Shown here: positions 27,096 to 63,865 of the stretch, in pieces
Layout of the letters: every line of letters starts with the position of its first letter
Position numbering within the stretch: position 1 is the stretch's first letter
Origin: Dimorphilus gyrociliatus
Lineage: Eukaryota; Animalia; Annelida
Assembly (NCBI GenBank): GCA_904063045.1
Contig: CAJFCJ010000006.1
Location: forward strand, 5,348,408-5,412,407
DNA length: 64,000 nucleotides
Direction of reading: 5' to 3'
The notes under the pieces: generated by a model
The model's database searches: none
What the model was told of the DNA's origin: nothing
Seen by the model: the letters and a program-made list of their open reading frames with translations, nothing else
Translations under genes and position numbers: made by a program

Positions 27096-29819
27096 TTAGA
27101 CGCTTAATACAACTTCTTCTTTTTCATACCATCCTTTTTTCCCTTTTAGTAAATAGCCTTTGCTGTGAATTATTCCACGAGATTTGATCAAGACTGAGTA
27201 TCTTGTGGTATAAGTAGCTTGCCAACCTGCTCCATCTCTCTCAGTAGACTCTGAACGGATAATTTGCTGCAGTGCAGAGTTCGTTATGATATCTACAAAC
27301 GTATAAAAGGCAAAATATATATATATATATATACTGTATATACATAAACTTTTAATTCAAAGATATTTATATAAAAGATAAAGACAAAAGTTTATTAAAA
27401 ATAATTGTAGGCCTACTAGAACAAATAATAAGCATAAAATACTCTTTTTTCTTCTTCACGTACAATAAACATTATCACAGTTTAAAGTTCTATTTTTTTC
27501 AAAATTTTCAACATTTCATTAACAAGTAGTGGTGTGAAATAATCATGAAAACATTGTTAAAATATAAACACGGAATTATATTCGTTATTTGTTGTTCGAT
27601 AATTTTTCTATTTCTATTTAATAACTTTAAAGTAAGTATTCTTTTCTATTTCTCTTTCTCTCTCTGTCTCTCTCTCTTTTTTTTTTAAAAAACAAACAAA
27701 ATACTCTTACAGAATTCTACAATTAAGAAAAATCCAAGTGTTCAATGTAAGATTTATAGGAATAATTCAGAAATTAATGAAATTACTATTGTAACTGCAT
27801 ATATTCGTTTAAAACCTTTTCCAAAGACATTTTTTAATAATACAAGAGGAGCGCCGGATTATTTAGTTTGGATGAAAACTTTCTCAAATATTTTAAATCC
27901 AGTAGTAGCCTTTTTTACTACTGAAGAAGATGCCGATAAATTCTTAGCTATTCGTAATTCTAAGCGTAAATTACCTACAATTATTAAAATAACTGATATT
28001 AATAGATTAAGATCATTTGAAACTGTTGAAGATGTTGAAAGTCTCTTTAATAAACCATATTATCCAAAGTATTTACCAAATACTTGGGACGCTTCTTACT
28101 CTTGTGCCATGAACGCGAAATACGAATTTGTAAATTGGGCAAGCGAAATTAATCCATACAAAACAAGATATATCGCTTGGCTGGATATTGGTTTATTTCG
28201 CGAATTGGTCAAGATCAATAAGTCGTTATGTTTAGGTTTGCCAGACGATTTCGACGAGTGTAAAGTATCTTATGGAGTAGTTCATCAAGCTCAAATGTTT
28301 GATAATAAGAAAATATTTTATCATAATTTAGTTTGGGTTGCCGGAGGTTATTTTATAGCCAATAGAGAAATTATGAAAAATTGGAGTCAATTTTATATGG
28401 AGGCTACTGGTCATCTCCTAGCTCAAGGACTAAGTAATACGGATCAACAAGTTGTATACGCAATAAGGAATACTTTATATAAATACAACAAAACGATTCC
28501 TATAAAAGAGCATTTTTGGGATGGATATCGTTATAATCCGTGGTTTTTTTTGGCGTTTAAAAGTAGAAAAGACCCAGGAAAGTGTACTATTAAAAACATT
28601 TTAAACAAAGCTATAGTAAATTGATAAAAACCTGTCGGATCATTGTGGGTAAGTAGAGTAATGTCGTGCTCTTTCGCGAAATTTACCATTTCTGTTGGCA
28701 TTTCACAGCAAGAATCCAAATTGACTTGATTAACTGTGGGTTTAATCTTGTGGAAAAATAATATAAAAACTATATTAAAAGGTATTTATATATTCTTTGA
28801 TAAGTTAATTGATAAATAATTTGCTTAACAGTTATTCTTATAATCAACTATTTAAAAGTAGTAATACAATTGTATTTACTTTAGCTGTATTATATAGACG
28901 CTCTAACTCATCAGTATCCAAATCGGAGAAACCTATACTGAAGATTTTATTTTCGTCAACATATTCCTCTAGTTTTGTCCACATGTTCTAGATTTATAGA
29001 TAGAAATTTTAATGAATTAATAATAATTATATAAGGAATATTAATTTAACTATTACTTCAATATTCTCGAAAGTGAATAACTTTTCAGGTAAGGCTACCA
29101 AAACAGTTTCGATAGTTTTTATTCCCAATTCCGTCATCACTTAAAAAAGGAAGAAAAATCCAATTTATTATTTAAGTAAACCTTTTTTCAATAGTTTATA
29201 CCATCTTGAATAGCTTCGTCAAGAGAATTCGGATTAGCTTGATTCATAAATAACTTTACTGTAAAATAATTCAATTAATTAAGAATAACAATATTAATAT
29301 AATTATTATAAATATTACTATACCAGTTATCTTAAAATTACTTCGATCTTCTAAACTCAACTTTTCCGTACTTGTATTTATCGATAGCTTTTCAATATAC
29401 TGTTTTTTTTTTAAAAAAAAAAAATTTGTTCTAATTTATATCGAAATTCTGTTGAAATAAAATTGAACACAGTAAAAAAGAGGTTTGAGTATTAAACATA
29501 AACCTGTTTTTTTTATCTCTAGCTGTCCTTCTTAATGGTATTGGTTGCTAAGCTTGAACAATAGAAAAGTACTTACTTGTAAATCATCCTTATCCGAAGT
29601 CTTGAGCCATTCGTGTAATGAATGCTTAATACAATCCGCTAACTAAATCATTTAAGAAAGTTGCTTATAGGACTTAGATTTAGCAAAGTCATAATTATAC
29701 GGAACCTCCTCTTTTGGGGTCTGTTGTATACGCTTCGATAAGCGGTTCCAATTTACAATGTTACCAGTATGAATAAAGATCTCAGAAGCTTTTGGAAATG
29801 TGGACGAACTTTCTTCCAT
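27096..29819 (-). CDS. GCLM: Glutamate-cysteine ligase modifier subunit
   Basis: MEESSSTFPKASEIFIHTGNIVNWNRLSKR, DCIKHSLHEW, IGFSDLD, KPTVNQVNLDSCCEMP...ITLLTHNDP, RYSVLIKSRGIIHSKGY. Eight short exons; the last intron (27293-28631) is large and hosts a nested gene. The extreme 3' end is approximate. Confidence 0.92.
27545..28624 (+). CDS. HtrL/YibB-like putative glycosyltransferase-fold protein, type II membrane, nested antisense in the last GCLM intron
   Basis: Exon 27545-27631 (TM GIIFVICCSIIFLFLF) plus exon 27713-28624 in frame. Motifs ITIVTAY, YSCAMNAKYEFV, NPYKTRYIAWLDIG, WVAGGYF, NTDQQVVY match the HtrL/YibB pattern as I recall it. Confidence 0.8.
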
Positions 29820-36197: not shown

Positions 36198-37178
36198 TTA
36201 AACGGCTGTTTCTATTGCCTTAGTTTTGTTTGGACTGCCATCTTCTTCCACGATTGAGCTATCGCCATGATCAACCACCAAGTGTTCCCTTAATTCATAC
36301 GCTAGAATGAACGATTTTTCGCAGACGGTGCAACGTATTTGATTCTCAACCGGATCGTGTTGCCTCATTTTATGCATTTTTAAGGCGCCTTTTGAGTAGA
36401 AATCTCTGTCACACATATCGCACGAATGCATTTTAATTTGCATATGTACTTTGATCACGTGCTCTTTCAAGCAAGACGTCGAAGGAAAATGACGATTACA
36501 AAGTGTGCAACCAATTTCAGTTGTAGATTTAGATAGATCCTTTACTTCCAGCGGTTCATCGTCTTCTCCATCAGTTAGCGAAAGTAGCGTATCGTCGTAT
36601 TTTTGACGCTTAGAGCGTTTTGATTCGGTAAATGAAAAAGATCTTTGACGATTACTTTTTGTTGATTTCTTACTAACATTTAAAATATCTGACGGTAGTT
36701 CAACTGGTGGGGAAGCGATCGTACTCGACTTATCGAAGAGCCTTTCGACAACTGTCTGCGTCTTTCGGGACGGTGTTTGAGTAAAAGCGTCCACATTCGG
36801 AGTATCGATTTTCTGTTCCTTACTAACCTTATTTTTCTTCGGATATAAAGCTTTCAGTTTAGATTGGATTGAAGAGCCGCTCGTAGACTGTTTCATGCCT
36901 TTCTCTTCTTTCTCGTCCGCAGGCGGTTGAAGGCATTTTTCAACCAATGAAGTAGCAGAGGACGTAAAACTCTTCCTCCTTAATCTTTTAGGCTTAATAG
37001 GCGCTTTGGGATTGATATTCTCTTGCAATAGACAATTCAACATTGCGTGTCCGTCGCATGAAAGGTGAATACTGCCAGTTATTGATAGATTATCCGTAAA
37101 ACTACAATTCGTCCTACACCAATCCCTTAGAGCAGCTTTAAGAGACTCACAAAGAGGATCGGAAGTTTGAGAAACCAT
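36198..37178 (-). CDS. Single-exon C2H2 zinc-finger protein (3 fingers) with an unnamed N-terminal domain
   Basis: Fingers CTLCNRHF...HVIKVH, CDMCDRDF...HKMRQH, CTVCEKSF...HLVVDH; probable ATG about 37178 (MVSQTSD). Confidence 0.85.
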   Translation of the reverse strand: MVSQTSDPLCESLKAALRDWCRTNCSFTDNLSITGSIHLSCDGHAMLNCLLQENINPKAPIKPKRLRRKSFTSSATSLVEKCLQPPADEKEEKGMKQSTSGSSIQSKLKALYPKKNKVSKEQKIDTPNVDAFTQTPSRKTQTVVERLFDKSSTIASPPVELPSDILNVSKKSTKSNRQRSFSFTESKRSKRQKYDDTLLSLTDGEDDEPLEVKDLSKSTTEIGCTLCNRHFPSTSCLKEHVIKVHMQIKMHSCDMCDRDFYSKGALKMHKMRQHDPVENQIRCTVCEKSFILAYELREHLVVDHGDSSIVEEDGSPNKTKAIETAV

Positions 37179-37415
37179 TATTAACAAATCTGTATACCCC
37201 CTTTATCGTTACTTCCTGTCTAACTCTACTAGTTGAATACAACTCAATTCGAATCGCCCGCCAAACCTACTCGCGGCCATAATAGAATTATTCAAATGAG
37301 CCGAGAAACGCTGGCGTTGATTGGTTCAGTAAACGAGGCCGGCTGGCGGCGCTGTCTTTGTTTCCAGAGCACGTTCCGTCCGATGACCGTTCAAAACGTA
37401 CGGCATCCGGAAAAG

Positions 37416-43204: not shown

Positions 43205-46200
43205 ATGGCTAGCCTGGAAAAATTAGTTAAAAGTTTAGATGCTCTAAAGGCTTACCATCCAGATACACTTTCTGAAGAAGTCAAGTAATACATTTTCAAT
43301 ATATTATATTACTAAATTAAAAAAACAAATATTTTATCATTTTATAAAATAGGAAAAAAGATAATGTTGCAATCAGGAAAGAGAAAAAGACAAATTGCAA
43401 TATTGCAGCTGATTGTATTTCTGCAAATGCTTTAAGAAATGTATCAGATTTCAATAATTTCCTGGGTTTAACGATAGAAGTGTTGCTATTTTTGTGTGAT
43501 GATCCGGACCCAGATGTCAGAACAGTAGCTGACGAATGTTTGAATAGAACAATCAAGGTAACCAATGTTTTTCATGTCTATTGTTCTGTGCTAACTTATT
43601 TTAATTAATTCGATTGTTGTTAAAACAGGCGCTGCTGGAAAGCTCTGTTAATCGTATTCATCTGGAACTTTTCAAAGAGATTAAAAAGAATGGGCCCTCT
43701 AGAACCCTACGAGCAGCGCTATGTCGTTTTACAGAGATGGTACATCTCATTAGAATACAAAAACGACGGTAGTAAAAAATATACTCAATACCTCGTTGTT
43801 TAAACGTTTACAACTATTTATATTTTTCATATAGGGCCTACGTTATGAATCTTGTTCAAACTATTGTCAAATTGTGTACTCGGGCTGAAGAGGCTGTTCA
43901 AGAATGCCTTGGGCAGTGCATGCAAAAGCTGTGTCCGGTTTTGCTATCCTATGCTAACGATGCAGAAATTAAGGTTTCGGCTTTCAGATATTTGTAGCCT
44001 TATAATTTCATAGAGTTTTATTTTACATTCTTCCAGGCACTTTTAAAGAGTTTTATGAGTAATTTAAATAGTAAATCAGCCACCAGTAGGAGAACGGCTG
44101 CGTCTTCTCTTGCTCTCATTTGTCAGTATGCTCGAAGACCTTTACTATTTACCGCTTGGCTTCTTGACTCTCTTTTAGGTATTGATACTTAATTCACTTG
44201 AAAATACTTTCCTTTCTGATAGTGAACTGTTATCAATTTCTTTATTACTAATAGATCTGGTGTTACCTATTTCACCTATATTGAGTAATGAACCATCTGA
44301 TTCCCCAATTCTACTGGGCGTTCTATTATCTCTTAAGAATCTACTACCACAGATAAGTGAACAGGAAAGTAGTTACGAGAGCGTAAAGGGAAGTTTCGGT
44401 GTTTTGAAAAAAGAAGAAGTTATATCGATAAAAGTGGAAAAGCTTTTGCAAGTTAGTTTCCTTTTTTGTATTTTTCTTCTTATCTATTGCGCAGTTTACG
44501 ATCTTACATTTTTTATCAATTTTTGTAGGTTTTTGAATTTGGAGTGCATTTATTATCACATTTCGACCATAATGTAATAAATGCATCATTGGATGCACTT
44601 CAAACGCTTTTAAGAAATTGTCCTAAAAAGTTGGCAGACCTTCTACTAACATCCGGAGCAGCTTCTGAAACGCATATATTTTCTGGTGATAAAATTTTTG
44701 AGCAAGCTACTAAAGGAGATACAATTCAAGGTTTGCTATAAACATTACTCTAATGTGCAAAACTGAGACAAATCTATCTACAATTTCCTCGTAGAAACAA
44801 ATTTTAGGTTGTCATCCTTGGCTGATGTCTCAAGCTTAACCGATGAGCCAATTGAAACGCATACTCGACTTGCGGAGACGGGAGATAATTCGACAAGTGA
44901 AGAAAGCGAGCCAGAAGTCTTTCCATCAGATGGACAAGACGAAGCTGGTAATTCAGAGGTTGCGGACCGGAGTATATCGAATTCGAGCTCAGAAGAAAAG
45001 TTATCAGAAAGTCTTCCCAATTTGAGTATCAAAACTCCTGATAATGGTGATATTAACAATTCAACTGAGAAGGAAGATGCATCCTTAATGGATACGAGTA
45101 AAGATTATTCTTCTAAAAATGGAGATATAGGAAATTTATCAGATAAATCGAGTATAGCCCTACTATACTTTGTTAGGTTGTTGTCTTCCAAATTTCTTTT
45201 AACTGGCTATAAGAATGGTTTGATTCCTGACAATGCAGTCAGAGTCAGCGTTAAAGCTCTAGCGTTGTCTTGCTTGTCAGCTGCCTCGTCAATCAGTCCT
45301 AAAATTCTCTTTGATACATTATTTATTGAGAAACTTGAAGATGATCCTCAGATGATTTTGGAGGTTATTTTCTATTCTAGTCACTCAGACCCTCAATTAA
45401 AGGGTAATGTATCGTTGTTGATTGGAAGTCTATTGGAGAATGTTCTCTTTCTGTGCGACGATAACGTAATAGAAGACTATATAGAAAAAACATACGGTCT
45501 CGGACGTCCAACGATAAGAGAACTTTGTAATCATCTGATAAAGATAGTTAAAGATGATTCAGCCGTTGCAGCGAAATTGGCTATAAGCAGTATTCGGAAA
45601 TTTTTGCCAACAATGCTTAATATGCCGTTAATGTGGGAGTCTGTCCAAATTCTTATGTCATTACTACAAGTTGCGGATAATCCATACTGGCTTGTTAAAG
45701 TTGAACTCTTAGAACTAATAGGAGAGTTAAATTTTCGTATCGTTAGCTATATGGAAAAGCGTTTCTCAGATACAGAAGAAAGTAAAAAATTAACTAATAA
45801 GGTATTTCTTGATTCATCGAAAAGGAATAATAAAATGAAAATTGTACACAAATTATTACTTATATTAAATATTTCTTTTTTAGCCATTAAACATTCAAGA
45901 AGTAATTTTGAACAAAATCCTATTGAAACTACTCAATGATTCAGATAATCGAATTCGCACTGCAGCTGCTTCTTCTCTTATGAAGTAATTTTATACTTTA
46001 CTATAGACTTTTTAGATTAATCTGAAAATATCTACATTCTTTAGGTGTTTACCAACTCTTTATTATTCTAATAACCTACTGCAAATGGATGAAGTTGTCA
46101 CGGAAACTAGATATAAAGTAACTAGATATCTGGATCCAATATTTCACGAATGGTCACAGCCCCCAACACCTATTGTTTATGGTTTGGCTTCCCCTTTCTA

Positions 46201-49200
46201 TAATCTTAAAGGATATTTCTCAGGAGATGAAGCAATCGAAGAAAATCTGTCACGTATTATTTCCACTTTATTATATAAACTATCTAGTACTAATTCAAAA
46301 CATTCTAAGGTTTGTAACTAATTATTATTTAATTTACACAAATATAGAGCCAAACATAATAATTCAATTTACAGGCTGGTTGTATATCGGCACTCGTACA
46401 AATTATTCAAGTATATCCCGCTACTGCTTATCCAACCCCATGGGGTTGTGGTGTAAGCAATTCTAGTTTCAAGTAAGTCTTTTCTCTTTATGAAATAAAC
46501 GAATCCTTTTCATCCTCTTATGTTTTGTCTTGTGTCTTTCTAGATCTCAGAATAACTCTGAAGTTGAAAATGATAATACAAGTGGTGGTGGCACTCTTCA
46601 AACTCTTCTTTCTTTTATAACAGCTACATCAATTACATTCGATTTATCGGTTCATCAGGAAATTCTTACTCTAATTGGTGAATTATACTGCGGTAAGTAA
46701 CAATTAAGCTAAACATATCAGTTAATGGATAGAAATATAACGTAATTTCCCATTAGGTGAAACGTATAAATGTTTAAGAAGTGTACCGGAAAACGATAAA
46801 GATAAACAGCAATGGAGCATGTTAAATGATAGACGGCTTTCAACCTTCTCAGAGCAGCTTCTACTGCATATACTCAGGTTTATAGAGGAATTTATAAACA
46901 ACATAAAACAATCTTTAACGCCTTGTTACTTTTTTCAGACTGTTAAACATATTTTATCACGTGATTGAAGAATGTCCGCCGATAGCTCCAAAGACAACCC
47001 TAAGCGCTCCATCTTTATCACCTATCAAGAAAAAAGCAAAAGGGCTTAAAGACGAAGCTTTAGCTGGCGTTATTAAAGACGGAGAGAAGGAAAAAGCGAA
47101 AGGTTTATATGATATATTCTTGCATTCGCTATCTAACTTTACGTTTTTTGCATAATTAAAGAAAAAGAGCTAGAGAAAAGTCCACCAAGTAAAACTGAAA
47201 AGATTGGTTCTTTTCATAATATAATACATTACATGAAACTTTATGATGTTTTAAATGCAACATACAATAGCTATAAGGTAGGCCTTTTAAAAGATAAAAA
47301 AGTTTATTCGGTTTGTTTTTTCTGCTAAGACTTGTTATTGTATTTTTAATTTTATATATAACAGTTGTCAGCTAGTCTCACATCGGAAGATCGATTTATT
47401 ACTTTTATGACATCAACTTTAACCGTTTTAAGTCAATTATTAGAAATTGCATCTCTGAAGGAAGTTGGAAAGTTAACTGAGGAAATTTTGAATTATTTAA
47501 GAGTTGTCAGTAACTTTGATGCGTGCAATAGCATTTACTGCGTTCAACAGGTGAGTTGAATAACATTAAAATAAGTATAGAATTGAGTTCCGTCCATCAT
47601 CTCTGTCCTTTGTGATTTATACTCAGTTTAAGTATGTTTTTGACCTTAATTAGACTGTTTTGAAGTCGTTTGCGTCTTGTAAAGCTAAGATTCAGTGTTC
47701 GTTCACGTCCAGTCATAAAATAATTGAAGAGTTAAAATCTTTTAAGAGAAAGTTTTTGAATTAATCTGTAATCTGGTATGGAACCTAATGTGGTAAGTTT
47801 TGTTGAAAAGTTCTAAATTGGTGAAAAATATTGGTTGAATTGAGCTGTTGAAATTCGACTAGGTTATAAAAGAAGAAAAGGATTTGACGGAAGAACTTTC
47901 ATTAGAAGTAAATAGTTCAACGAACTGCCCAATTATTAGCGTTATTGACAGTCCCTGTTCTGATGTTTTGAACGAATTAACAACTGTATATCGTAGGGAG
48001 GACGAAATCCCATCCAATATGAATGAAATATGTGATGAAGTATTTAAATTTATTGAATCTGATTTAAATAATATAGAAGAAAGCTCAGCAAGAGATAGCG
48101 AATCATCAACCGTAGATGTCGAAACAGTAGATAGCGGGAAAAGTGGACTTGAAGATAATCTTGGATGTGAATTAAGCGGTAGTATAAATAAGCAAATTAA
48201 TAATTGCGAAGCAAAAGTAAAAAGGAGAAGAAAAAAGAAAAAAGCCGTTATCGAAATTACACAAGATCAAATGTGCTTTAACAACGCTAAAGTACCAGAC
48301 GCTGCGTACTCACTACCATTTGACGACATACAATATATTGATTCCTCAGGATTTTCAACATCTATTCTAGCCCAAATGCTGCGAGACGATTCTTTGTCGT
48401 CAACAGCTTGTGACGCAGCTGAATCGTTGATGAACGCTAGCTCGGCACTTTTTGATGGCACAGATAATTTAAATGAAACGACATCTCCACCTATAACTCC
48501 TAAAAAATGTTTGGATGAAAATTCACCAAAAATACAAAGCGTTTCGGAAGGATGGAAGTGGCACGATAGAATGAAAGAGGCTAGAACAAAAAGAGATAGA
48601 ATTCGTAGGTCGAACGTTCTAGATCCGAAAGCTGTAAAGATGATGTCCGATTGGTATAATAAAAATGCGGCTCATCCATATCCATCTAATGAACAAAAGC
48701 TTAAATTTGCGAGTGAAGGGGGAGTTACTTTAAACCAAGTAAAGTCTTGGTTTAATAACAAGAGATGTCGTTGTTCACATACAAGACCAAGGAGAGAAAG
48801 AAAGATAACAAATTAAAACAGAGATTTATTAATTTTTCATACTTTGTCGTGTTCTTTATGTGTATATATTCAGAAAAAAAATTAACTATATTCATTTTGA
48901 ATTTATGAAATAATTGATAGTATTCATTCCATTTTGTGTTCAATAAATTGTAATTTTTTTGTATTTATCAAAAAAGCAAGCATACTTTAATATTTTATAT
49001 CTTTGTTTAGTTATTGAAAGCATTGTTTGGTACAAACTTATCGTCTCAATGGGATTCATCGAATTTCAATTCGGACGTTGCAAACAAAGGAGGCCCTGGA
49101 AAGGCAACTCGCCTTATTGCTCCATCCGGCTTTTACATGGGACTATATCATTCCTGCTTCACCGCCCCTTATACTCAATTTACTCAATCGCTTGCATCCG

Positions 49201-52200
49201 TTACTCTAAGAACAGGGATGCCAAGTGAACATTCGGATTCTTCTAGGTATGTTAATTAGTAACTAATGAATTAATTTCCTTATTTTATGAAATAATTAAT
49301 TATTTAATTTATTCTGATAAACAGTCTTTTATCCTGGTTAAAGAAAAAGTCAGAAAAGAGATTACCATCGACATTGAAATCTGATAGCAAAACATCCGAC
49401 AGAGCATTTGTATCTTCTTACATCAGACTATTTGAAACGTCCGTTATAAAAGCGCTGAAGCTCTATACAACGACATCTTCCTTGCCTTTACAAAAACAGG
49501 TACGTTAATTAATTGAATAAAAGAGTACTTAATATGTAATAATCATTTCACCTTCTGCATTTATGTGATTTTTTGCATTTATATGATAGGTTCTAAATCT
49601 ACTCTCTCAATTAGTTCAATTAAGAGTAAATTATTGCTTGCTTGACTCTGATCAAGTTTTTGTTGGTTTTGTTGTGAAGCAAGTTGAAAATTTTGAAGAG
49701 CAACAGTGCGATGGGATTGAAAATTTCCTTCCACATCTTTTATATTTTCTAGTGCTACTTTCCTACGAAAAATATCATTCAAAGCCTATTATAGCCGTTC
49801 CTAAAATTATTCAATTATGCGATGGAATCATGGCTAGTGCCGATCATAGACATTGTATGATGCTTCAATATCTTATACAATTGTCATTTATTAATCAATT
49901 ACATTCTTTTTAGTGCCACCAGCCCTGCAGCCCGTAGTTAATGATCTGTTTATCTCAAGGTCCTTGAATAAAGCGGACAGTGGAAAAGACTTAGATACTC
50001 AGAGAGAAGTTGTTGTATCAATGCTACTTCGTTTATTGAACAATTACGAAGCTCTCGAATTACTTGGTATAGTATTGCAAGCTAGTCGTAGGGAAACAGA
50101 AGAAAAATGGAAACGATTATCAAGACAAGTTGTCGATGCTATTTTACCTTTACTACAAAATCACCAAGTGCCTATCCGCAATCAAATGCAATTAGACGTT
50201 CTTCACCGTCTATTCGAAGCTGTTGCTCCAGCCGTCCTGAGGCCCACAGATATATTATTAAGATATCTCTTCGCTAAACCAAGTTCATTGGTGCGTTAAG
50301 TTTTATTAGCTTTTTTTATTATAAGCAGGCATTGAAATTGCCACTTGGCAAAAGAGAAAGAAAAATTGAGTTATTTATAAGATAGAATATTTAATTTATA
50401 TTAATTCTTTAAAATTAGAAATCAACGGAATCTTTAGAGTCATGGATGAGTTTGGTATTAATAATACTAAGAGTATTTCTATCGCAAAGCAAGGAAGATA
50501 TGATACTATCACGAATACACGAAATGCAATTAACTATTCCAATATTAAAAACAAATTCGGAAAATCAACAAATTTTTCCAGCAGCAATAACATTTACAAG
50601 GTTAATAATTGTATATAAATCCTATATACATGTAAATAAAAGCTTATTATGAAAATTAATAATCTAATTTCTTAGGAAATATGAATATTAATTGAATAAA
50701 TAATTTTGTTTCTTTTTTTTTTACTATAGATTTATTCTACAAACTTTTGGTATTGTTGTAGAATATTTGAATAAATCTAATAAAGATTTATTAACAAAGG
50801 TTAAACGAACTTTTCTGGAACAACAACTATCCCACCTTTTATTATACACAAGTCATATAATACAATGTGGGCAGTATAAGAGTTTTAGTAAAACTCTTAA
50901 GGAATTAGGAGAAGATAATACCAATAACTTCTATTCAATCAAAGATTTAAATAAGCTATTTTTACAATTGGCAAAAGAGAAACCGATATTATCATTACAA
51001 TGGTTTAATATATTAAATTTAATAGAATGGATGGATTTAACATATTGGAAGAAGTTATTACTAAGCGACGAAATATTGAATAAACGTGTTAATTGCAATT
51101 TAGAAATAATTAGAAGATGTTGTATAGTATTATTTAGCGATAATACTGTAAGTTGTTTTTAAATCATTTACATTTAATATAATCTGTTTACTTAGTATAT
51201 TAAATATTAAACTATTAATCTATTCATCCTTTTTTAATATGGCAGAAATTGGACGTAACTAAGAAGAGTGAGCAAGTAAATTTTATTCTGGACAATAATA
51301 TTACAGATTTAATTGATATGTCTCAAGAACCACCAATACAAGATTTAATAAGGTAATACTCATATCTAATGATACAGCATATACTGTATTTTATTGGTTT
51401 GCCTTTTATGTACAGTTTATATAAAACTTTTACAATACTTTTGTTTTTATTTGTTTCTAATTCTAATTTAATTAAATAGCAAAATACAAGAGAAATCAGA
51501 TCAATCGTTAGTTTTTATACAAACTATAAATGATAAGTGCGAAAGTCTGTGTGAGGTTAGTTTTTCTTGCTTTTAATTTTGTTTTTTTTTTAAATACCGT
51601 CTTTTCTTCTTTTCTCTTTTCATCTATAGGAAGCTGAAAGAGTTTACGATTGTTTGAAGTGCTTAAGGTGTGCTCATCAAGAACAAACCGCTCCTCTTTT
51701 ACGACTTATCATTACGCGTATTCTTCCGCAACGTCATTTAATGGCTGTTGGTCGATTCGCCGATAACGTCGCCTGTCAAAGAACCGAAGTTCTTTTAGCA
51801 GCTATAGCTCAGGGGAAAATTGATCAACCACCCTTAGAAGACATTGAAAAATTGTTAAGTTTTATGGAAGAGCGTGGTCTATTGAAACGATACGCTCGGC
51901 TAGCTACTCTCTTATCAAAGTTAATAATAGGGAATTCAAACAAAGCTAAGCAATATTTAACTGAATCGAAATCGCAGCATCCTTTAAATACTGTGGGAAA
52001 ATTAACTCAAAATTCCATTGTCGATAAAAACTTGGTTATATCAATTGTTCAATACGAGTGTTCGAAAAGAATGCCTAACTTCAGAGATTGCGCCCAAATG
52101 TTATCTTGTTTGGAATACGCCGACATTGTAAACATCCTCATGTCCTCATCCACTCATCAGTCCATAATAGGGGAATGTTTAAAAACGGGGGCGGAACTAT

Positions 52201-55200
52201 CATTAGCCTCCTATGACGAAAATTGTTTGCTTGGTGGGAAAAAAAATTATTCAGGCGATGAAAGTCTCGTTCCTTTGTTCAGGGCTGCCGAACTCTGTTT
52301 AATACGTAAGATTAGTGAGGTGGTCAGCGACCTTCCGGCCCCCCACGAAGTAAGTGATAAAAGTCTTCCGACGACTTTATTATATAAATATTCTCTTTTT
52401 ATTTTATCTTTTACAACATATTTAATTCCTTTGACAAAGAATGTAATTCTTTCCCTTCCCTTTAAATGTAGGTTCTTATGTGGGATGAGGATGAGAAAAT
52501 ATCTCCTCTATCACCAAGGGGTAAACAATACCGTGATAAACTTTTGGAAAAGTTTAGTGATAGTCATTGGTTACAAGGGTGCAGGAGGCTAGCCGGAGCT
52601 CTATTGGAATACTTAAGCGTTATTCCGTCGCTTCCATGGCAAGCTTCCGACGACAATCTACGCGACGCGACAAGATTCTGCGTGCTCGGATTTGAGGTAT
52701 GTGTTTAGATTAGTCAATCCCTAATCCTTGAGTAGGCTTACGCTAAAAACCTATTTCCAAAACGTTAGGCCGATTTGTAGGGATGGGCGTTTGTGGATAA
52801 GATTAAGTCGTTATATGCGCGTTCCGGACTATCGATCGCTATCGATCACAGCTTTAGTTTTCTATTCAATTTATGAAATTATTATAAATTATTTTATCAG
52901 ATAAAAACTTTGAAATCGTTCCTATCGAACTTTGACTGTTTAGTCATCATGACAACAAGTTCGCTTATTTCATCCTTAAACCATAAGCCTACTTCAATAC
53001 GAATTGCGCAGAAATATTTTCCATATAGGCGTATGTTTATAAATTTGTTTATTAACAACGAGTATTTCCCGAAATAAGGAATAATTGCAAATACTTTTAC
53101 AGACGGCTTTTTTTTTATCGTTGCAAAAAAAAAGGAAAAATTTGGTTTTTTTATGTTCATAAAGATGGAATATGTGAAGTGTTATATATATTTGTTTTGT
53201 TTCATCTTTAACACGTAAACTCCTTCAAATAATAGTTATTTAAATTACGTAAATAGTCCTCTCTTTCCTTTTACTCTTCCTCTATCCTGGATTTCTTGAA
53301 TGGAAGGAGGAGGGTAGCGAGAGGTGGGACAGGAGAAGGAAAAGGAAGAATAGGAAAATTTTTCCTCGTTTCTTCCAAATGATAGTTTCACAATTTTACT
53401 ACATTAATGTCTTCTTTTTTTTGGTGTTTTTACCGATTTTTCTTCTTTTTTTGTTTCTTTTTTTCTAGTACTTTTTGGTCATCTTTTTTTTTTACGAACT
53501 TTGCGGTGATTCGCACTTGACGTAGGTCTGATTATGTTGAACACTGCAATGGTGTTTGAGATCGTCTTTACGAGTGAAAGCTTGTGGGCATTCTGTACAT
53601 CTGCAAGAAACAGTATTTTTTTATTTTTTAGTCTATTATCCTTTTTTTTCTCTCTTTTAGGGCGTGGTCTCCACGCATGTACGAATTACTCCTTTTTTAT
53701 ATTTTATGTACTAGTATATAATATATCTGTTAATGTTGTTATATACTTATATAAAAAGATAGGTAAATAATTTTGTTTACCTGTACGGTCTTTCACCCGT
53801 ATGTAATCGAACATGCCGATCTCTATTACCCTTTTGTGTAAGGGATTTTCCACAATAAGAGCAAGGATATCGTTGGTGTAATCTTCTACAATGATCGTCA
53901 AACGCCGCGAATCCACGTATTGGTGTTGAGCAAAATTCGCAGTCATAGAGTCTTTCCTCCTGTTCTGATGAACCATTTAGCACCACTGTATCGTTTTTAG
54001 TGCTTAAATTAATTGGCTCGTCTGAGGATGAGGTACTGTTTGGCGAGTTTGGCGAATAATCCCTTGGTCGTTTTTGTGGGATTTGAAATGTCTTAGTTGT
54101 ATCCGTATGATCCGCTTCGTGTTCTTCTAGCTCGCCAATTGTACGAAATGGAGGTATTTGAGGACAGAGGACACATTGAAAAATAGGTGCTTGTATACTG
54201 GAATGCATTGTAGTAACGTGTTCACCGTAAAATACGGGATCGGCAAATCCGATCTGGCACAGTGTACAAGTCCAAGTTGCTCCAACATTTTTGTGCATAA
54301 CTAAGTGTTTGTGTAGTTTAAGAATGTCTCTTGATTGAAATCCGCAGTAGGAACATGACTGTTGACATAATGACCTTTTTCTAGACCTATGAGATGCCAT
54401 TAGCGAATGTATGGGTGATGGTTGTACGGTTAGTTCTTGTTGCCTAAATATCTCGTGGAATTTTATGACAACATCTTTGCCATCAACATTGACAACAATC
54501 ACTCCATCAAGTTGTCTAGGTGTTCCGAGATGTGATAAAGTAGTACGACATAACTCGATTATTGTCGGCTTTAGCCTGTTTTCCACAGTATACGACGTTT
54601 GCATGATTTCGCCTGTTAGAGAAAAAAAAAGAATAAAGAGAAATGATGAGTCAATTATTTTGGGTGGGGCGGTGGAAAAAGAGTACAAAACACCTATTGT
54701 TCAAACGATTACTATCTTATCGGAGAGCTACGCCGTTCGATTTTGTTTGTCTAACGATATAGGAATCATCCCACAACAAGAAATTAGTAATTGAATAATT
54801 TCTTTGATAAAATGAAAGAGTTTTGTTTAAAAAATGAAATCAGAAAAAAAAAATTTACCTTGAAGAAGTAAATTCTTTAATAGAAAGAAAAATGGTGTTT
54901 TTTTCTTTTTCTATCTATTTATCTATCTATCTATCTTATTCTTTTCTCTTTACTAGTATCTATTTTGTTAAAACTCTCCTTACTAACTTTACACAATTTA
55001 AAGATAGGAAGGAACATAGGTTTATGTTTTTTTTTAATATATATAAAAAGAGAAAAGAAAGAATTATATATCGATTTGGCCAACGAATTAAACCAGTTTG
55101 ATTCATTATACCCATACTCTGACATCAGATGGAAAAGATAGCTTATCTATTTTCTTCATTTTATAATTTGAGATAATAAAATTTCTAAATTTTTTTTATA

Positions 55201-58200
55201 CCGCCTCCGAATATGCCAAAAAAAGCTTATAGGTACTTTTATCTATAAATTTTATCTATCGGAATGCTCGGAACGATTTCGTCAATGACTTTTTGGCGCC
55301 ATCAGCGACTATCTCTTAATTCGTTAACCTATTAAATATATATTTTATTGTGATTTTTGAAGGGTGATAAATAGGATAATTGGGGGTTACGTAATTTGAG
55401 TAGAGGGGAAAAAATTTTTTATAACGTTTCACGATCCGATAATAATAAGTACAAATGAAAAGGAATGATTGAATAGGAATTACGAAAGACGAGTTCGTAG
55501 TTGAATGACAGTTCACAATTCGTATGAACGCGTATATACCGCGTATTGTACTTGAGATATATAGGTTTTCCATTATAAATACTTTTTTTCTATATTTTCA
55601 AGTGAAAAAGGCTCCTTTCTAAAGACTAATATTATAAAGGATACCTTAGAATTGCAACGTAATACACGTTTTGTTTTTAGGCGCCAAGGAGTGCTTTTTT
55701 CATAAGGCTATTATCTAATTGTCAAATTACATAGACACTTGTTCCTAATTGAATGATACGTAATTACTAAACAAAAATATAAAATATAACTTACTTTCTT
55801 GCACCATATAAGAATACATATAAAATATATATATATATATATAAAGTTGTAACAAAATTTAGGTAAATTACATATACATAGATGTAAATTTGAATATTGT
55901 ATATACATGTATATATATATATATAAACTGTCTACTTATATATACTAATATATGTATATATATATATATATATGTGTAATTAAAGTATTTAAGCGCGCAT
56001 AAAAAAGAGTGATATCCGTCTTTTAAGTTGAAAAGAAAATCTTACACGTAGGAGAAAAGGGGAAGGAATAAAATGAAAAAGAAAAAGGAGAAATATATTT
56101 TATACCTAATGAATACAAAGATATATTCATATATATATATATATAAATAGATATATATTTTCTCCTTTTCTGTCAATAAAATACACGATTTGGCACGTTG
56201 TCTCCGTGGAAGTGTACTTTATTCAAATCTCGAACGCCTACAGATTTCCATGAGTCAGTTGTTTAGCGATTGAACGCACGCGGCGGCTCTTGAACTGGAA
56301 ATAACTTACCTAAACCGATCAGGTCATCCGGTCCGCGCAATTGAAATTCTCCAAATTGTAGCGGTAAAAGTTGACAGAATGGTTACCTGAATCAGCGTTT
56401 CTCCTGGAATGGGCGTGGACGCCGTTAGCGAGATGTACTGCTGCCTGCGGCGTCACGCCCTTTCTCTTTAGCACGTTTCCATGCTTGTTTTTTGACATAT
56501 GTTTGTCAACATCGGTTCTTGTTTATTGATAAGTTTTGAACACGAAGGAGCGTCTATTTCAATACGTAACCGCACACAGATAAGACAGTATAAACTGTTC
56601 ATAAACTTATGACAATTATATACTTGTGTTTCTTATTTCGCTTTTTAATCTAAATGTACACACGGTGAAAAGCGTATAATCTATGCTTTTATAAGGTAAC
56701 AATTTAAATACGTACAGTTACAGCTATTCTTAAAATACCCCTAGATTTTTGTGTCTATATTTTAACGGTTTTTTTTAGCCTTTTCTTTTCTCTTTTACTT
56801 ATATAAACGGGTTTAAAAATAATATTATTTTCTACATAAATTTTATTCCTCTTTCGTCTTTTTTTCTCTAAAGTATTCCTTTTTAAACTTATTAATTTAA
56901 CGGTTTGATGATCGTACCTGTGTTTGAAATTTCCGTTTGACTAACATCTTTCGGTAAGGTTTCCGCAGACCTATCCATAACGCTCGAAATTTAATAATGA
57001 ACTGTAATCCGGCTCTGTTTATTATTCATCGAACTTAAAGGCCTAGAAAAATTCTGCCTATCCTTATCTTTTCTGTTTCATATTTTTCTCCAACCTACCA
57101 AGGCTGAATCATACTTCCAAATGTCTTTTCCATAACTGACGCAATTTATGCTTAGCAATATGTATGAATATTCAAAAATGACCTATTACTAAATTCCACA
57201 AAGGAGTATACACAATCATCTTTTTATTGAATAACAACTAAACAAGAAAACATTTAAAAGTTATTGTATAGCGATCTATTTACATATATACAATGACTAA
57301 AATATAAATAGCCCAAAATGTATCACGTAATGACGATATACACCCATTCTTGGTATTAATATTCATATTTTTTATGGCCTAAACATAAGAAGTAGGAAGG
57401 TCTATTGAATATATTTTGTCTTATTTTTCCTTTGCTTTTTTTTTTAAGTAGTATTGCTATTTTCTTATGAATTCAACTGTGACTTAACGATTGCTTAAAG
57501 ATATGTAAATACGAAAAGAGACATTCTTCTGCGAATATTCTCAATTAATATCTAAAAATATATAATATTTCTTATGTCCTTTTTTCCCCCCTTGAATAGA
57601 TAATTCACGTTAAGTTGAACGAAGGCGGTTCTTTATTACATTCCACCCACATACAAACGTGGCTAAAATTGGGAGCTGTTTCTCTGCAATTCCCTCAAAT
57701 TTCACAGGTAATAGGAAGTAAGGAAAGAAAATCATGGGTTTGCACGGCTGTTGCAGCTCTCTACCAATTAGTTTGCACGGGTAAATTATTTTATTATATG
57801 CTTATAATATGAATATCTAAACACACATACATATGCTTATACTATACATATATAATATATATATATTTGCCCACATACCTGTACATTCATTCATACGTGC
57901 ATCATACACAGTACAAATATACAAATTTGACACTTTTCTTACTGTGTATTTATATACTAATATTGTAGTTATCTTTAATTTTTATATAGTTGTCCTACTG
58001 CCCGGACAAAAACTTACAAAATTAAAAGTTACAAGCGAAGAAGAGTATATTCCGAAAACGGCTGATGAACTACACCACACAACCGAAGCATGCGATAGAA
58101 TATCTGAACTAATGTATGCCTTGAGCTCGCAACTGTCGTTTCTAGTAAAGAACAGGGCGTTACCGGATTATATATTATATCCTTTACGCAATGTTATCAT

Positions 58201-61200
58201 AGGTATAGCTCGATTGCCTTTAGTAAATAGCTATGCTAGGACACCAATGTTAGCATGGCGTCTTGGTTGGATTCCATCAGTTTCTGGAGAGAATAGAACA
58301 AGTTTACCTCCTCTCCCTCAAGAACTACTTATGGAGAGAGAAGTTTTAATAGAATTTATAAGACGTATTAATTGCTTGGGGTGGATATCGAGAACACAAT
58401 TTGAAGAGACTTGGATGAGTTTATTAGGTGTTTTGAGTCCCGCAGCTGAAGAGGGCGGAGGGAGCGTTCAGGTATTGAATTATCTTTTCCATTTTAAAAG
58501 CCTTTTAGAAAGTAATTAATAGGAAATTAAAGAATATCTTAATCAAGACTACATATATATGCATTTCCTATTATGCTATATATTACTATGTATCAACTTT
58601 ACATAGATATATTTATATAGCTTTTTAAATAACTATATACGTATGAATATACAACATGTCTCTTTTATCAATTATTTTAGGATATAATGGAAAGAAATCA
58701 TTGTTCATCTTTGGCGTTGAGAGCAATGACAGCACTTTTGCAGTATACAACACTAGCGCCTCATAGCGGCAATCCGGCAAGTAGTTCCACTTCACCTGGA
58801 CCCAGATCGGCTAATCTTTACAGTTTAAGAACAAGGTGAGTATTTAGATTATAGTAGAAAAAATTTTTATTTTATTCAAATTAGGCATATAATAGATAAC
58901 TATCTACACTTAGTACAAAACTGTTGGAAAATTCTATGAGGTCACAAATTTTCCCTAAACTAGTATTTTATTACATACTTTATTTGTTAGTATAGGATAA
59001 TTTACAGTTAAAAAAAACACGACAGACAAGGAATCTCTAATTGTACAGGCACTATAAACTCTTCTTCCATACTATACTTTTGTCTTGTTTCATTCATTCA
59101 TTTATCAAAATACTTTTTCTCTATTATTATCAATATTCCATTATCTATTTTTACTCTACATAATATAATATTTTAGGTTGGTTGTACAATATAATAACTG
59201 GAAAGAGAAAGTAAATTGAAATGATGTAAAGCAATTTTAGTAGCGTGTGAACAGTACAAAAATAGATAAGTCAATCAAGAGAAAGTTTTCCATAGTTATT
59301 TTTTTATCCTATATATAACAATTAGAAAAAATCTAACGATGACATCTGGATATTCATATCGGAAAAGTAATTCGATGATTCAACACCAATTTTTAGATTA
59401 TTTTTGCGTAGATTCCTGATTTTTTCGATTTCCATTCTTAATTTTTCATTTGTCACAATTAGTTCCTTTTCTCTTCTTTCCAAATTTAGTATTTTTGATT
59501 TGTGCCTCTCTCTGCTTCGTTTACATTTTTCCGCGTGTTCCGGATCCCGAGGAGGTTTTCTAGTCCTACTTGTCTGTATTTAAAAATAAGGATATTACGT
59601 ATTATTTAAATATAAATATATATATATAGTAGATAACTATATATAATCATTTATAATGTCATAAAACTTGTTCCGCTTATTAAAACTGACCTTTCTAATC
59701 TCTTTGTTGTAACCTTCTTCTACACGTTGATCAGGAGATATCGTAGATGGTACTCCAATTTGTTCGAAATCTAAAAAAAAAATCATTACAAGCGTAAATC
59801 AATGATAATACTTTTAAGATTATTAAATATAGTAATTATAAACATGTACTAAAATGCGCACCAGGAGTTACCATTAGGCCGCTTTTTTCATTAGCAGCGA
59901 GTTTTTCCATTGGTGAATTACATTGACTTGAGTAGTCGGGTGTTGGATATAGAGAATTTCCATAGCCTTCATCATGAACATTACATGAAGACTCTTCCTC
60001 GTTTTCCGCTGGATATTCACTCCCAGAATTCAATTCTTGTTCTATAAAAGCTATTAATGTTGGCTTTAAACACTCAAAAGCTGGAGATTTTATTATCTCT
60101 TCCAGATTACGATTATCAATATCACTGGTATCCATAAGAGACTCCATCATTTCTTAGGTAACTATGGAAAAATGAGTGATATAAAAAGTATTTATTGTTA
60201 AAAATGGCTGATTTTTTGTCTTCCTGGCAAATATAGGATAGGCTCTATTATAAATAGTGATAATATAAATTAGACAGCGCCACCTAACAGACTATATTGT
60301 TGGCCAACCACTTTGTTATGCCTATATTATATATTGTACATATCTTATTTATATGAATACTATATTGTCGAAATTTATAAATAGTACCATACCCTTCTGA
60401 ATTGGTTTAGGAAAACTTTTAAATCTAGGAAGGCAAATCGACGAATGACGTCAATAGATACTAAAATTACTCGATCTTTTGTCAGAGCTACCTTGAAAAA
60501 ACTAATACTCTAACTTCAGAAAGCCTATGATACCTTTTATTTCCTTTACAATATCTTTACTGAAAGGAAAAAGAGGAAAGAAAAATTCAACTTTATTACT
60601 TTATTAGCATTCTATTAAAATTTACGCCGTTACGTAGGTGCTTTTTCATATTGACTTAACTTCTATGTCAATAATCACTTGTTCTTTAGTTTTCTCTCTC
60701 TCTCTCTCTCTCTCACTCCCTTCCTATCTCTCTTTCCAATACCAATGCTTCTTTTCCTTTTTTTCCTCTTTTTGAAAAATCTTGCAATTTTACAGATAAT
60801 ACCCAATATTCTGTATAATAAATAATCCACTCTATTGATACTATAAATAGACTATAGATAAATCGTTAAATATCTAGAATTATTCAATATTCAATCAAGT
60901 GTTCAATATAAGTCCTACCTTTTGTTATAGTAAAACTTGCTAAATAATATATACTTAGATGTTATAATAAAAAAGTGAGGGAGAGTAGAAAACGAATAAA
61001 AGGAAGAAGTGAAAGAGAAGAGGGGTGGGGGAGAGAAAGAGAATAAAGGATAGAAATATTACTATATTATTATAAACATATTATTATGCAATACGGCATC
61101 CTAAACAAATATAGCTGTAGATTAAAAAAAAACAATCATTATGCAGTATAATTAGAAATATGTAAAATATTTTTCTATAATATTTTAACATAATGTCTTA

Positions 61201-61383
61201 TATTAGAATAATTTATATATATTATATATTTTATAATTAGATGGGGAAGGTATTATAGTCTTATAAGAATACTTCTCCAAAAAGAATTGGAGATAATTCA
61301 TCAACTTCACAGGTAGCTTTAATGTTGTAAAGCAAAAAAAAAAATTGTTATTGATTGATTGTTGTATAATTTATTATACCATT

Positions 61384-61426
<43 letters not shown>

Positions 61427-63865
61427 TACTCTTTTCTATACTTATTAATAATTTTAATTTATTTAATGATCTATTATTATTGATTTAGCTAGTTAATTTT
61501 ATTATAATTTGGTTTTTAGTTGACTTTCCTTTCTCTTATTTTTTGTTTAAAAGCATAAAATTTTATGATTTTGTTTTATTTTATGATAAGAATAGTAGAG
61601 ATATTTTTTCCACTGTTTTCTTTTTTATTTTCATATTTTCTCTTTCGGTTTATTGCTTCCTTAAACACAAATATCACGTGACTAATTTAAAAATATATAT
61701 ATAATACATCATATATGAAAAATTAGTGTTTATATAATTAACTTTAATAACCATATATAGCTCGAATACCAAACCGTTTGCGGAGAAACGAATAAACGTC
61801 GATAGATTAAATAGTTTATTTGATGAAAATTTGGAATGTCAGCTCGGTCATATCGGATTCTCATTTAGCCAGGTACGTCATTCCGTTTATTAGATATATC
61901 TACATGTATATATATATATTTTTGTCAGCGGATGTATAAAAAAGAATACGAATATACTGTATATACAGTATATATAAATGTATATATTGTATTTTGAGAT
62001 ATTCAATTCTTCTTCTTGTTTCCTTTCAATTTTCTATTTTGCTTAAACGTCTATACTGTATATCAACTTAAAATAAAAAAATAGAGAAATATAGTTTTCC
62101 ATATAGAAAACTTTAAAAGAAACATCACAAACACTAAGCAAGTATATGTACTATTATTCTAAATAAGGTTATAAGAAACAAACAAAGAAAAGGGAAGAAG
62201 GTAAAGTTAAGCATGCGTTAATAGTTTCTTTTTATATTCTATTTTTATATTCATATTTGTATTGAAAATACTTCTCTGTTTTTCTCTTTATCTATTTATC
62301 TGTTTTTTATTATCATTCTACTTATTTCCTTTATAATAGGGAAAATTCAGATTTTTTATTAATTTAACTAACTTCTACTTATATAGACAGCTTACTGCAT
62401 ACAATATGCATCTAAGCTATATACTTATATATTTTTTTATCTTGAAACTTTCCTTTTGTCAATGTCTTGTTTAATTCAAATCAAGATGAAACATTAAAGA
62501 AATCGACTCATTTTATTAATATACAATCAAATTGGTATCCCTTATCATAGTAATTTGTTTTCTATTTTAAATTATTAGAAAAGTGGTCGATCTATGAGTC
62601 ATTCGGCATCAACTGGAGATGATTCAACAGCCTCTGATAGTCCCGATTTGGAGATGGTGGAAGCTCCGAAGACTGTCTCTATGGTTACGGGTAAAATTCT
62701 TGTTTAATTATTTTCATTTAAAGTTAAAACAAAAGTTTTATTTTATTGCTTTTTCTTTATTGTTCGTCTTCATCTAACGTCTTTAGGAGATGAACTAGAT
62801 ATTCGTTCCTGTGTCCAATTACTTTTGGATTTATTTACTCAGTTTGTTTCTCCATCACCGGAGATAGCCACACCTCCAGCTCTTCTATGTCAAGTTATGC
62901 GATCGGTTAGTAGCATCGACTAAATAGGATAAAACTATATCCTTTAAGCCATAAAATACATATGTTTGTTTTCTTATCCCTTTTTTAGATGGTTGCTGTT
63001 ACGGACGTTTTAGATCAAGCACCCCATTATGAATGGTTATTGCATAATTTATTACAAGTTGATAAATTAAGACCAGTTGATGATGAGCTTGTTAGGCAAT
63101 ATTTAGCAATTGGAGCTTGTAAAGCTGCCTGTTTTTCGGGACAGGTGACTAGATAACATTTATATAAAATACTGTTTATTTATTTATCTATAAAATTATA
63201 ATCTTTAATTAACAGTTTGAAATGAGACAAGAAAAACTGATATCTCTTATTGATAATGGTCTACAATCGAGTCATGTTCCAAGTAGAGCTGCAGCTCTTC
63301 ACGCCTCTGTTTTTCTATTACAATCTGCCCCCAACAACAGCGTAAATTCAATAGTACTAAATTACCTAAAATCTTTACTTCAACGCCATTTATTACCTTT
63401 AACTTCTTGTCAATTTTGGTATATAATATTATTATTACATAACTATTATTTAAAAAATTATTAATGATTTATTGTTTTCAATTCAAGTACGTCTAACGAA
63501 CAATACTGGTTAACCGTTTGGTCGGTTGCATTCTATTTATTAGAGAATCACGCAGAAGAACTAGCTGATAATGAATTCTGTTCAAAGATATTGCAGGTAT
63601 AATATGTCTAATACGTATTTACATAATAAAATATATATACAGTATATATATATAAACTGAATAGATTGTTTATAATAATAATGGAGAGATTCTTGACCAT
63701 CCTTTTAATTCGTTTTTCTTTATAGGCTGCTATCGATAAGACGTACGAAGATAAAACGGCCTTGGGTCTATACTTATGTCTTATAAATGGCTTTGAACGT
63801 CTTATTTTATCCGGTTGCTTATCAACTAGTCAGATTACTGCTGTTGTCAAGTTATCCATAAACAA
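43205..63865 (+). CDS. HTT: Huntingtin (3' end beyond the window)
   Basis: N17-like [17 protein letters not shown]; [20 protein letters not shown]; [16 protein letters not shown]; [13 protein letters not shown]; CVQQ|[10 protein letters not shown]; [20 protein letters not shown]; [15 protein letters not shown]; [14 protein letters not shown]...[19 protein letters not shown]. More than 30 short exons. Three large introns (47551-49010, 52697-57599, 58837-61240) each contain another gene. Confidence 0.97.
47778..48816 (+). CDS. TALE-class homeobox protein (spiralian/SPILE-like), nested on the same strand in an HTT intron
   Basis: Micro-exon ATG GAA CCT AAT GTG|gtaagt (47778-47792), 70-nt intron, exon 47863-48816 (322 aa). 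Homeodomain [56 protein letters not shown] with the TALE PYP loop. Confidence 0.85.
48942..48947 (+). terminator. Putative polyadenylation signal of the nested homeobox gene (inside an HTT intron)
   Basis: AATAAA 126 nt after the homeobox stop and about 60 nt before the HTT acceptor at 49009-49010. Confidence 0.5.
53492..54604 (-). CDS. C2H2 zinc-finger protein (6 fingers), nested antisense in an HTT intron
   Basis: Exons 53781-54604 and 53492-53600. Fingers include [50 protein letters not shown]; PINLS (CtBP-motif-like). An acceptor just upstream of the ATG (54613-54614) implies 5' UTR exons further up. Confidence 0.88.
59322..60150 (-). CDS. Divergent bZIP transcription factor, nested antisense in an HTT intron
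   Basis: Exons 60150-59844 (or -59850), 59770-59691, 59573-59322 join in frame (about 212 aa). Exon 3 gives [56 protein letters not shown]: x7-R-x9-L-x6-L-x6-L-x6-I with Asn at heptad position a. Confidence 0.75.
61386..61423. repeat. (TA)n microsatellite in an HTT intron
   Basis: About 19 perfect TA units. Confidence 0.9.

Follow-up and report, generated by a model that had tools for sequence, protein, structure and literature searches.

Why does the huntingtin gene (HTT) of the annelid Dimorphilus gyrociliatus, which lies in a compact genome (73.8 Mb, median intron 66 bp; PMC7854359), contain three introns of 1460, 4903 and 2405 nucleotides (nt), and what do these introns hold? We addressed this question in a window of 64,000 nt, the whole stretch of DNA analysed (assembly GCA_904063045.1, contig CAJFCJ010000006.1), and all coordinates given here are positions in that window, which is densely packed with genes. 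The reading that we consider very likely is that of a single HTT gene with three independent genes nested in its three longest introns, an ordinary case of nesting in a compact genome. An initial annotation had placed a same-strand TALE homeobox gene, an antisense six-finger C2H2 gene and an antisense bZIP gene in these introns, and had taken the arrangement to imply transcriptional interference or co-regulation between the host and its passengers.

HTT lies on the plus strand and runs from before 43.5 kb to beyond the end of the window. The Pfam profiles Htt_N-HEAT, Htt_bridge and Htt_C-HEAT match plus-strand exons in their proper order between 44.8 and 62.9 kb, with PF12372, PF20925 and PF20927 each above cut-off on successive HTT exons; this order identifies the host gene as huntingtin. 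Its introns were derived from a frame-keeping GT..AG chain through stop-free segments. About 30 introns were found in the window, some 23 of them between 59 and 129 nt long. Four others are of intermediate size (209, 209, about 448 and about 706 nt), none with an open reading frame (ORF), and both 209-nt introns are confirmed by RNA joints. The initial description of HTT introns as mostly 50–130 nt, with three exceptions, was thus right in substance and omitted these four. Each of the three largest introns contains one gene. The limits first proposed for the first two (47551–49010 and 52697–57599) are unchanged, and the third intron starts at 58836, not 58837. The HTT features on which the argument depends are as follows, with a slash marking exon–intron boundaries.

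47365..47550, plus strand: HTT exon before intron 1 (Htt_N-HEAT 478–534; donor CAG/GTGAGT; conserved in the relatives' contigs L001 and L003)
47551..49010, plus strand: HTT intron 1, 1460 nt, host of the TALE gene (donor CAG/GTGAGT, acceptor TTTAG/)
52472..52696, plus strand: HTT exon before intron 2 (X4 RNA contig)
52697..57599, plus strand: HTT intron 2, 4903 nt, host of the zinc-finger gene (GAG/GTATGT, AATAG/; X4 junction)
57600–57780, 57990–58471 and 58681–58835, plus strand: three HTT exons between introns 2 and 3 (joints in X4, X1/X3 and X2)
58836..61240, plus strand: predicted HTT intron 3, 2405 nt, host of the bZIP-like gene (donor AAG/GTGAGT, acceptor TTAG/, frame kept)
61241..61312, plus strand: predicted HTT exon after intron 3 (in-frame continuation)

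Read contigs from runs X1–X4 were compared with positions 54400–60399 of the window. X4 is a run of D. gyrociliatus, X1 and X3 derive from a relative (organism A), and X2 is a marine metatranscriptome. The X4 contigs match the window at 100% identity and comprise spliced HTT in plus sense together with both antisense genes in minus sense, and the word depth of intronic X4 contigs is several-fold lower than that of the spliced ones. Because of the spliced contigs in both senses and the lower intronic depth, X4 was treated as an RNA-seq-like run. Contigs of relatives were taken from ERR14224705 (L001) and from SRR23372228, SRR23372229 and SRR23372216 (L003, L004 and L005). Joined (spliced) gene models were translated, checked for length and stop codons, and compared with database proteins, and the GenBank annotation was transferred onto positions 43492–64000 (20,509 bases, 100% identical).

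The continuity of HTT was assessed at each of the three introns. The exons that flank intron 1 correspond to positions 478–534 and 535–596 of the N-HEAT profile (the latter in the exon from 49011), with no gap between them, and the GenBank HTT model spans this intron. At intron 2 the evidence is direct. A 2598-nt X4 contig with three spliced HTT exons starts at 57598 and is preceded by the letters of 52665–52694, and therefore the HTT transcript joins 52696 to 57600, which supports HTT as one gene across at least this intron. The three exons that follow (57600..58835) match Htt_C-HEAT 243–385 and 402–449. At intron 3, an AGA codon is split and completed at 61241. The exon before the intron aligns to human HTT at about residues 2496–2541 and to C-HEAT 402–449, and C-HEAT 575–613 is found downstream, again on the plus strand; the small exons in between would have about the right total length to fill this gap in the profile. 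The exon at 61241..61312, judged by eye, presumably corresponds to human HTT after residue ~2541, and a PDB sequence search with its 24 amino acids returned nothing. The intron 3 junction is thus one predicted from splice-site consensus, reading frame and the order of homology and domains.

Inside these introns, each of the three genes has an intact spliced ORF, as the initial annotation had proposed, with products of 322 (TALE), 310 (zinc finger) and 206 (bZIP-like) amino acids, the latter two identical to public proteins. In each case the coding region lies within the host intron (47551–49010, 52697–57599 and 58836–61240, respectively), together with the splice joints and the poly(A) signals. 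Nested gene and flanking signals fill most of each intron, and the length of these introns is explained by the complete gene that each contains; the earlier statement to this effect holds, and is close to a tautology. Under this reading, each nested gene would be a transcription unit in its own right, having separate splice sites and a poly(A) signal of its own, as RNA joints document for the two antisense genes and as comparison between species suggests for the TALE gene. The whole nested unit would then be removed from the HTT pre-mRNA together with the intron. The packing of the nested signals against the HTT splice sites is tight.

The gene in intron 1 lies on the same strand as HTT, and its model comprises two exons that encode the 322-residue product without interruption.

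47575..47700, plus strand: conserved non-coding block upstream of the TALE start (comparison with L003)
47778..47792, plus strand: predicted TALE coding mini-exon 1, ATG and four codons, GTAAGT donor (identical in three lineages)
47863..48816, plus strand: TALE exon 2, with homeodomain and stop codon (Homeobox_KN; selection measures below)
48942..48947, plus strand: putative AATAAA signal of the TALE gene (sole AATAAA/ATTAAA between the stop codon and 49100)

The homeobox assignment is borne out by a Homeobox_KN match with an expect value (E) of 3e-11 (43.4 bits against a cut-off of 24) and by PDB matches to PBX1, MEIS and PKNOX (E ~1e-9), with PBX1 and MEIS ranking highest; the PBX1 alignment places the PYP loop. 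The sequence thus predicts the three-residue extension between helices 1 and 2 by which the TALE class is recognised. In common with PBX/Exd, MEIS, PKNOX and TGIF proteins, the product has the three-residue loop (…HPYP…), the WF-N-KR recognition helix and the Homeobox_KN match. Unlike PBC and MEIS proteins, it carries no PBC-A/B or MEIS/HM domain, Pfam being silent outside residues 257–300, and the 240 residues before the homeodomain match nothing. A word-based protein search with the TALE exon recovered close relatives only, and when the ORF, taken from its internal ATG, was looked up as an exact sequence, the protein collection contained no identical record. A spiralian-specific expansion of TALE genes, SPILE, has been described (PMC6118893, PMC8524836).

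The mini-exon, 70 nt upstream of exon 2, is needed because an in-frame TAG stands just before 47863. Comparison with other species points the same way. Contigs of two relatives share the HTT exon, the mini-exon, the acceptor and the TALE ORF, and L003 carries HTT exons on both sides of the gene. The TALE coding sequence differs by 15% between these two relatives. Against L001, the ratio of nonsynonymous to synonymous differences per site (pN/pS) is 0.085 at a synonymous divergence close to saturation (pS 0.72), and the last 87 codons are 100% identical in protein at a pS of 0.77. Such values indicate strong purifying selection. Over the 52 codons that separate the acceptor from the first internal ATG, pN/pS is ~0.11 in both relatives, which implies a translation start further upstream and so supports the spliced mini-exon. 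Ahead of it, positions 47600–47699 are 86–92% identical to L003, versus 42% at 47300–47349 (mostly a small HTT intron), and the block at 47575–47700 is probably a TALE promoter or 5′ untranslated region (UTR). The block is also more conserved between species than most nearby coding sequence, and has no Rfam match. The TALE gene is not among the genes annotated at the locus, so that a constrained and conserved homeobox gene is absent from homeobox surveys of this model annelid.

The gene in intron 2 lies on the opposite strand and encodes a 310-residue product from an intact ORF, identical to DgyrCDS5595.

53492..53600, minus strand: zinc-finger last coding exon, sixth finger and stop codon (TGERPY/R-C linker)
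53781..54612, minus strand: zinc-finger main coding exon, five fingers, ATG at 54604 (zf-C2H2; acceptor joints in X4 and X2)
56310..56350, minus strand: alternative zinc-finger 5′ leader exon, 3′ part seen (joint 54611>56309, X2; donor TAG/GTAAGT)
56918..56947, minus strand: zinc-finger 5′ leader exon, 3′ part seen (joint 54611>56917, X4, word depth 1178; donor CAG/GTACGA)

Six C-x2-C-x12-H-x3-5-H units with TGEKP-like linkers can be read from the sequence, and the full-length protein scores 34.3 bits with zf-C2H2 against a cut-off of 25.2; a C2H2 zinc-finger protein is thus predicted. The TGERPY/R-C linker straddles a 180-nt GT..AG intron. The main exon begins 8 nt upstream of the ATG, and both leader exons splice to this one acceptor, which bears out the 5′ UTR exons of the initial annotation. 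A relative's genomic contig (L002) is collinear with the region over 3.4 kb, and its protein is 97% identical (pS 0.53, pN/pS 0.027). A word-based protein search with the zinc-finger exon found close relatives and one generic finger match, with no other close homologue. Two minus-strand zinc-finger genes of the window, at 36198–37187 and 53783–54604, were also compared: their finger regions align at E 0.001, and their N-terminal match is weak (17.3 bits, E 0.38, ~40 residues).

The gene in intron 3, again antisense, has three exons and an intact ORF of 206 codons whose product is identical to DgyrCDS5597.

59322..59573, minus strand: bZIP-like exon 3, candidate basic region and zipper, and stop codon (joint 59573>59691; bZIP_1 sub-threshold)
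59691..59770, minus strand: bZIP-like exon 2 (X4 joints on both sides)
59862..60150, minus strand: coding part of bZIP-like exon 1, ATG at 60150 (joint 59770>59862)

A 1706-nt X4 contig contains the joints 59573>59691 and 59770>59862, which are CT..AC on the plus strand and hence GT..AG on the minus strand. These joints fix the three-exon coding sequence, including a weak G/GTGCGC donor that could not have been decided from the genomic letters. The transcript contig continues beyond 60399. Poly(A) signals on the minus strand lie at 58984, 58972, 58876 and 58871, the last two only ~30–40 nt from the HTT donor. A word search with exon 1 gave no candidates, under a search length limit that would exclude the 206-residue full protein. 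DgyrCDS5597 is an orphan, and the contigs of organism A are unrecognisably diverged beyond 59017; the gene is therefore either fast-evolving or absent in that relative.

Several observations weigh against a single HTT with three nested genes. The HTT junction 58835>61241 was not seen among the RNA contigs, which covered 54400–60399; the X4 and X1/X3 contigs stop at the exon end 58835, where the assembly graph branches. The library type of X4 is not on record, and its status as RNA is read from its own splice joints. The TALE gene as an independent transcription unit is argued from comparative evidence. The third gene falls short of its class threshold, since Pfam bZIP_1, whose cut-off is 27.6 bits, gives 20.9 bits with exon 3 (E 4e-4) and 16.3 bits with the full-length product, and the invariant Asn of the basic region (N-x7-R) is replaced by His, eight residues before the conserved Arg. 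Finally, three DNA-binding-type genes out of three is above a random draw, and there may be some functional reason for it. The first of these points bears on a reading in which HTT is not one gene but three (models of 2221, 276 and 373+ amino acids), with the zinc-finger and bZIP-like genes lying between genes and not in introns. GenBank does list three HTT-domain models on the plus strand, of 2221 amino acids (ending at 52708), 276 amino acids (57318–58839) and 373+ amino acids (from 62594), separated by DgyrCDS5595 and DgyrCDS5597. However, the first two read through consensus donors to the first intronic stop (52708 and 58839), and the small exons at 61241–61312 and ~61761–61872 are omitted from the models. 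The X4 contig that joins 52696 to 57600 makes the first annotated cut an artefact, and the second is very probably one too. The C-HEAT profile continues in order across the gap. To our knowledge, no organism is known in which huntingtin is divided within the C-HEAT domain. We regard a three-gene HTT as highly improbable. The weak profile scores raise a different question, whether the third gene encodes a DNA-binding bZIP at all or instead a coiled-coil protein or a CHOP-like partner for dimerisation only. In favour of the latter are, besides the His substitution, a further basic-region change read from the sequence (Lys-Cys for Ala-Ala), a bZIP_2 score of 12.2 bits against a cut-off of 22.3, non-significant PDB bZIP matches (E 0.6–2.5) and an exhaustive HMMER search with exon 3 of 1.84 billion cluster representatives, which returned only DgyrCDS5597 itself. 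Set against this, the register H-x7-R-x9-L-x6-L-x6-L-x6-I is exactly canonical, with an Asn at a zipper ‘a’ position, and the nearest language-model clusters are all bZIP families (score 0.90). A single-sequence structure model gives one long C-terminal helix at residues 134–195 (block-mean predicted local distance difference test, pLDDT, 74–98; 96–98 across 141–180), on which the leucine heptad repeat would lie in register with the basic region along a continuous helix. On balance, a protein that does not bind DNA is possible, and somewhat unlikely. DgyrCDS5597 is best called bZIP-like, probably a degenerate or partner-dependent bZIP. The initial antisense bZIP gene accordingly stands as an antisense three-exon gene with RNA joints and a sub-threshold class label, and the ‘three transcription factors of three classes’ reduce to two solid assignments (TALE and C2H2) and a tentative third.

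The single-gene reading leaves the relation between HTT and its passengers to be weighed. The TALE unit could be coupled to HTT, either through a fusion of the HTT N-terminus with the homeodomain or through a TALE poly(A) signal that truncates a share of HTT transcripts. The phase is 0 both at the end of the HTT exon (47550) and at the start of TALE exon 2, so that a direct join would be in frame without a stop. The putative AATAAA lies 63 nt before the HTT acceptor, and premature polyadenylation and exonization of host transcripts through nested genes have been reported (PMC3192792). A phase match is, however, expected by chance in one of three cases, and the TALE gene has a conserved ATG mini-exon, donor and upstream block, as an independent gene would. 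No fusion protein appeared in the word search, though the length limits of that search would hide one. We consider such coupling unlikely. If true, it would mean a truncated N-terminal huntingtin or a huntingtin–homeodomain fusion conserved in three dinophilid lineages, and TALE-linked truncation would have a natural parallel in HTT1a, an isoform that arises by intronic polyadenylation. Human HTT1a is an HTT transcript polyadenylated in intron 1. As there, a poly(A) signal on the HTT strand within an HTT intron could end transcripts early; unlike there, the signal would belong to a nested gene and lies in a mid-gene intron. A broader proposal is that the nesting is kept by selection, with HTT and the three regulators interfering with or co-regulating one another. 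All three nested genes encode proteins of DNA-binding type, the TALE nesting is conserved in three lineages, and the poly(A) signals indicate that nested transcripts end very near HTT splice sites. Yet such conservation should arise even without selection, since a gene once lodged in an intron has no easy way out, and spliced HTT (plus sense), zinc-finger and bZIP-like contigs (minus sense) occur together in one run (X4). That all passengers are of DNA-binding type is mildly unusual, and is a post-hoc observation in which one of the three is tentative. Selected nesting is therefore improbable in our judgement. The interference or co-regulation that the initial annotation saw as implied finds nothing that shows coupling: a regulatory role of the arrangement is not demonstrated, nor is a regulatory link to HTT in evidence. 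It would raise a new question on huntingtin or on transcriptional interference only if coupling were shown.

A single HTT with three ordinary passengers agrees with what is known of nested genes in animals. Intronic nested genes account for ~6% of Drosophila genes (PMC3786989), and of 74 host genes in a human sample, 23 carried two or three nested genes (PMC3192792). The earlier statement that no such arrangement had been described is therefore not upheld, intronic nesting being common and hosts with several nested genes documented. As with 2mit in Drosophila tim2 (PMC3786989) and the human multi-nested hosts (PMC3192792), the genes described here are complete within single introns, several to one host, two of the three on the opposite strand, with their own splicing and poly(A) signals (those of the TALE gene predicted). 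Unlike those cases, the host is huntingtin, in a genome of 66-bp median introns (PMC7854359). Given this compactness, nearly all long-intron sequence of HTT is due to the nested genes. No paper on nested genes within huntingtin came up in a full-text literature search; huntingtin as host is new, and the type of arrangement is already known. All three nested genes look lineage-restricted or fast-evolving, which would fit small young genes lodging in introns. Thus, in a genome whose introns have a median of 66 bp, the few long ones become explicable by the genes they hold. The split HTT annotation also has a practical consequence, as comparative HTT or gene-content studies that rely on it would miscount.

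The two longest HTT introns without a gene, at 61313–61760 (~448 nt) and 61873–62578 (~706 nt), are AT-rich, contain TA repeats and have no ORF. ATAC-seq (assay for transposase-accessible chromatin with sequencing) peaks have been reported in unusually long introns of this genome (PMC7854359), and these two introns could be regulatory. An Rfam scan of 43–64 kb gave no accepted match; its two mir-297 matches were rejected as sub-threshold and located on TA-rich repeats. A suspected relationship of DgyrCDS5597 to CHOP/DDIT3, noticed by eye, was likewise set aside without computed support, HMMER having returned DgyrCDS5597 only. CHOP/DDIT3 is an atypical bZIP with a degenerate basic region. Judged by eye, DgyrCDS5597 resembles it in being small, with a disordered N-terminus, a C-terminal basic-zipper helix and substitutions of invariant basic-region residues, but its sequence is significantly similar neither to CHOP nor to any other protein.

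The sequencing runs yielded further observations. Spliced X2 contigs are 93–100% identical to the HTT, zinc-finger and bZIP-like genes (window 54400–59527), which points to the presence of D. gyrociliatus, or of a very close relative, in that marine sample. X1 and X3 contain a spliced HTT contig over 57598–58832 and also contigs of genomic type that carry a different sequence in place of an intergenic stretch. Elsewhere in the window, an ORF at 27872–28624 on the plus strand matches Pfam HtrL_YibB (E 5e-9), a family described as bacterial, and could be an old horizontal acquisition.

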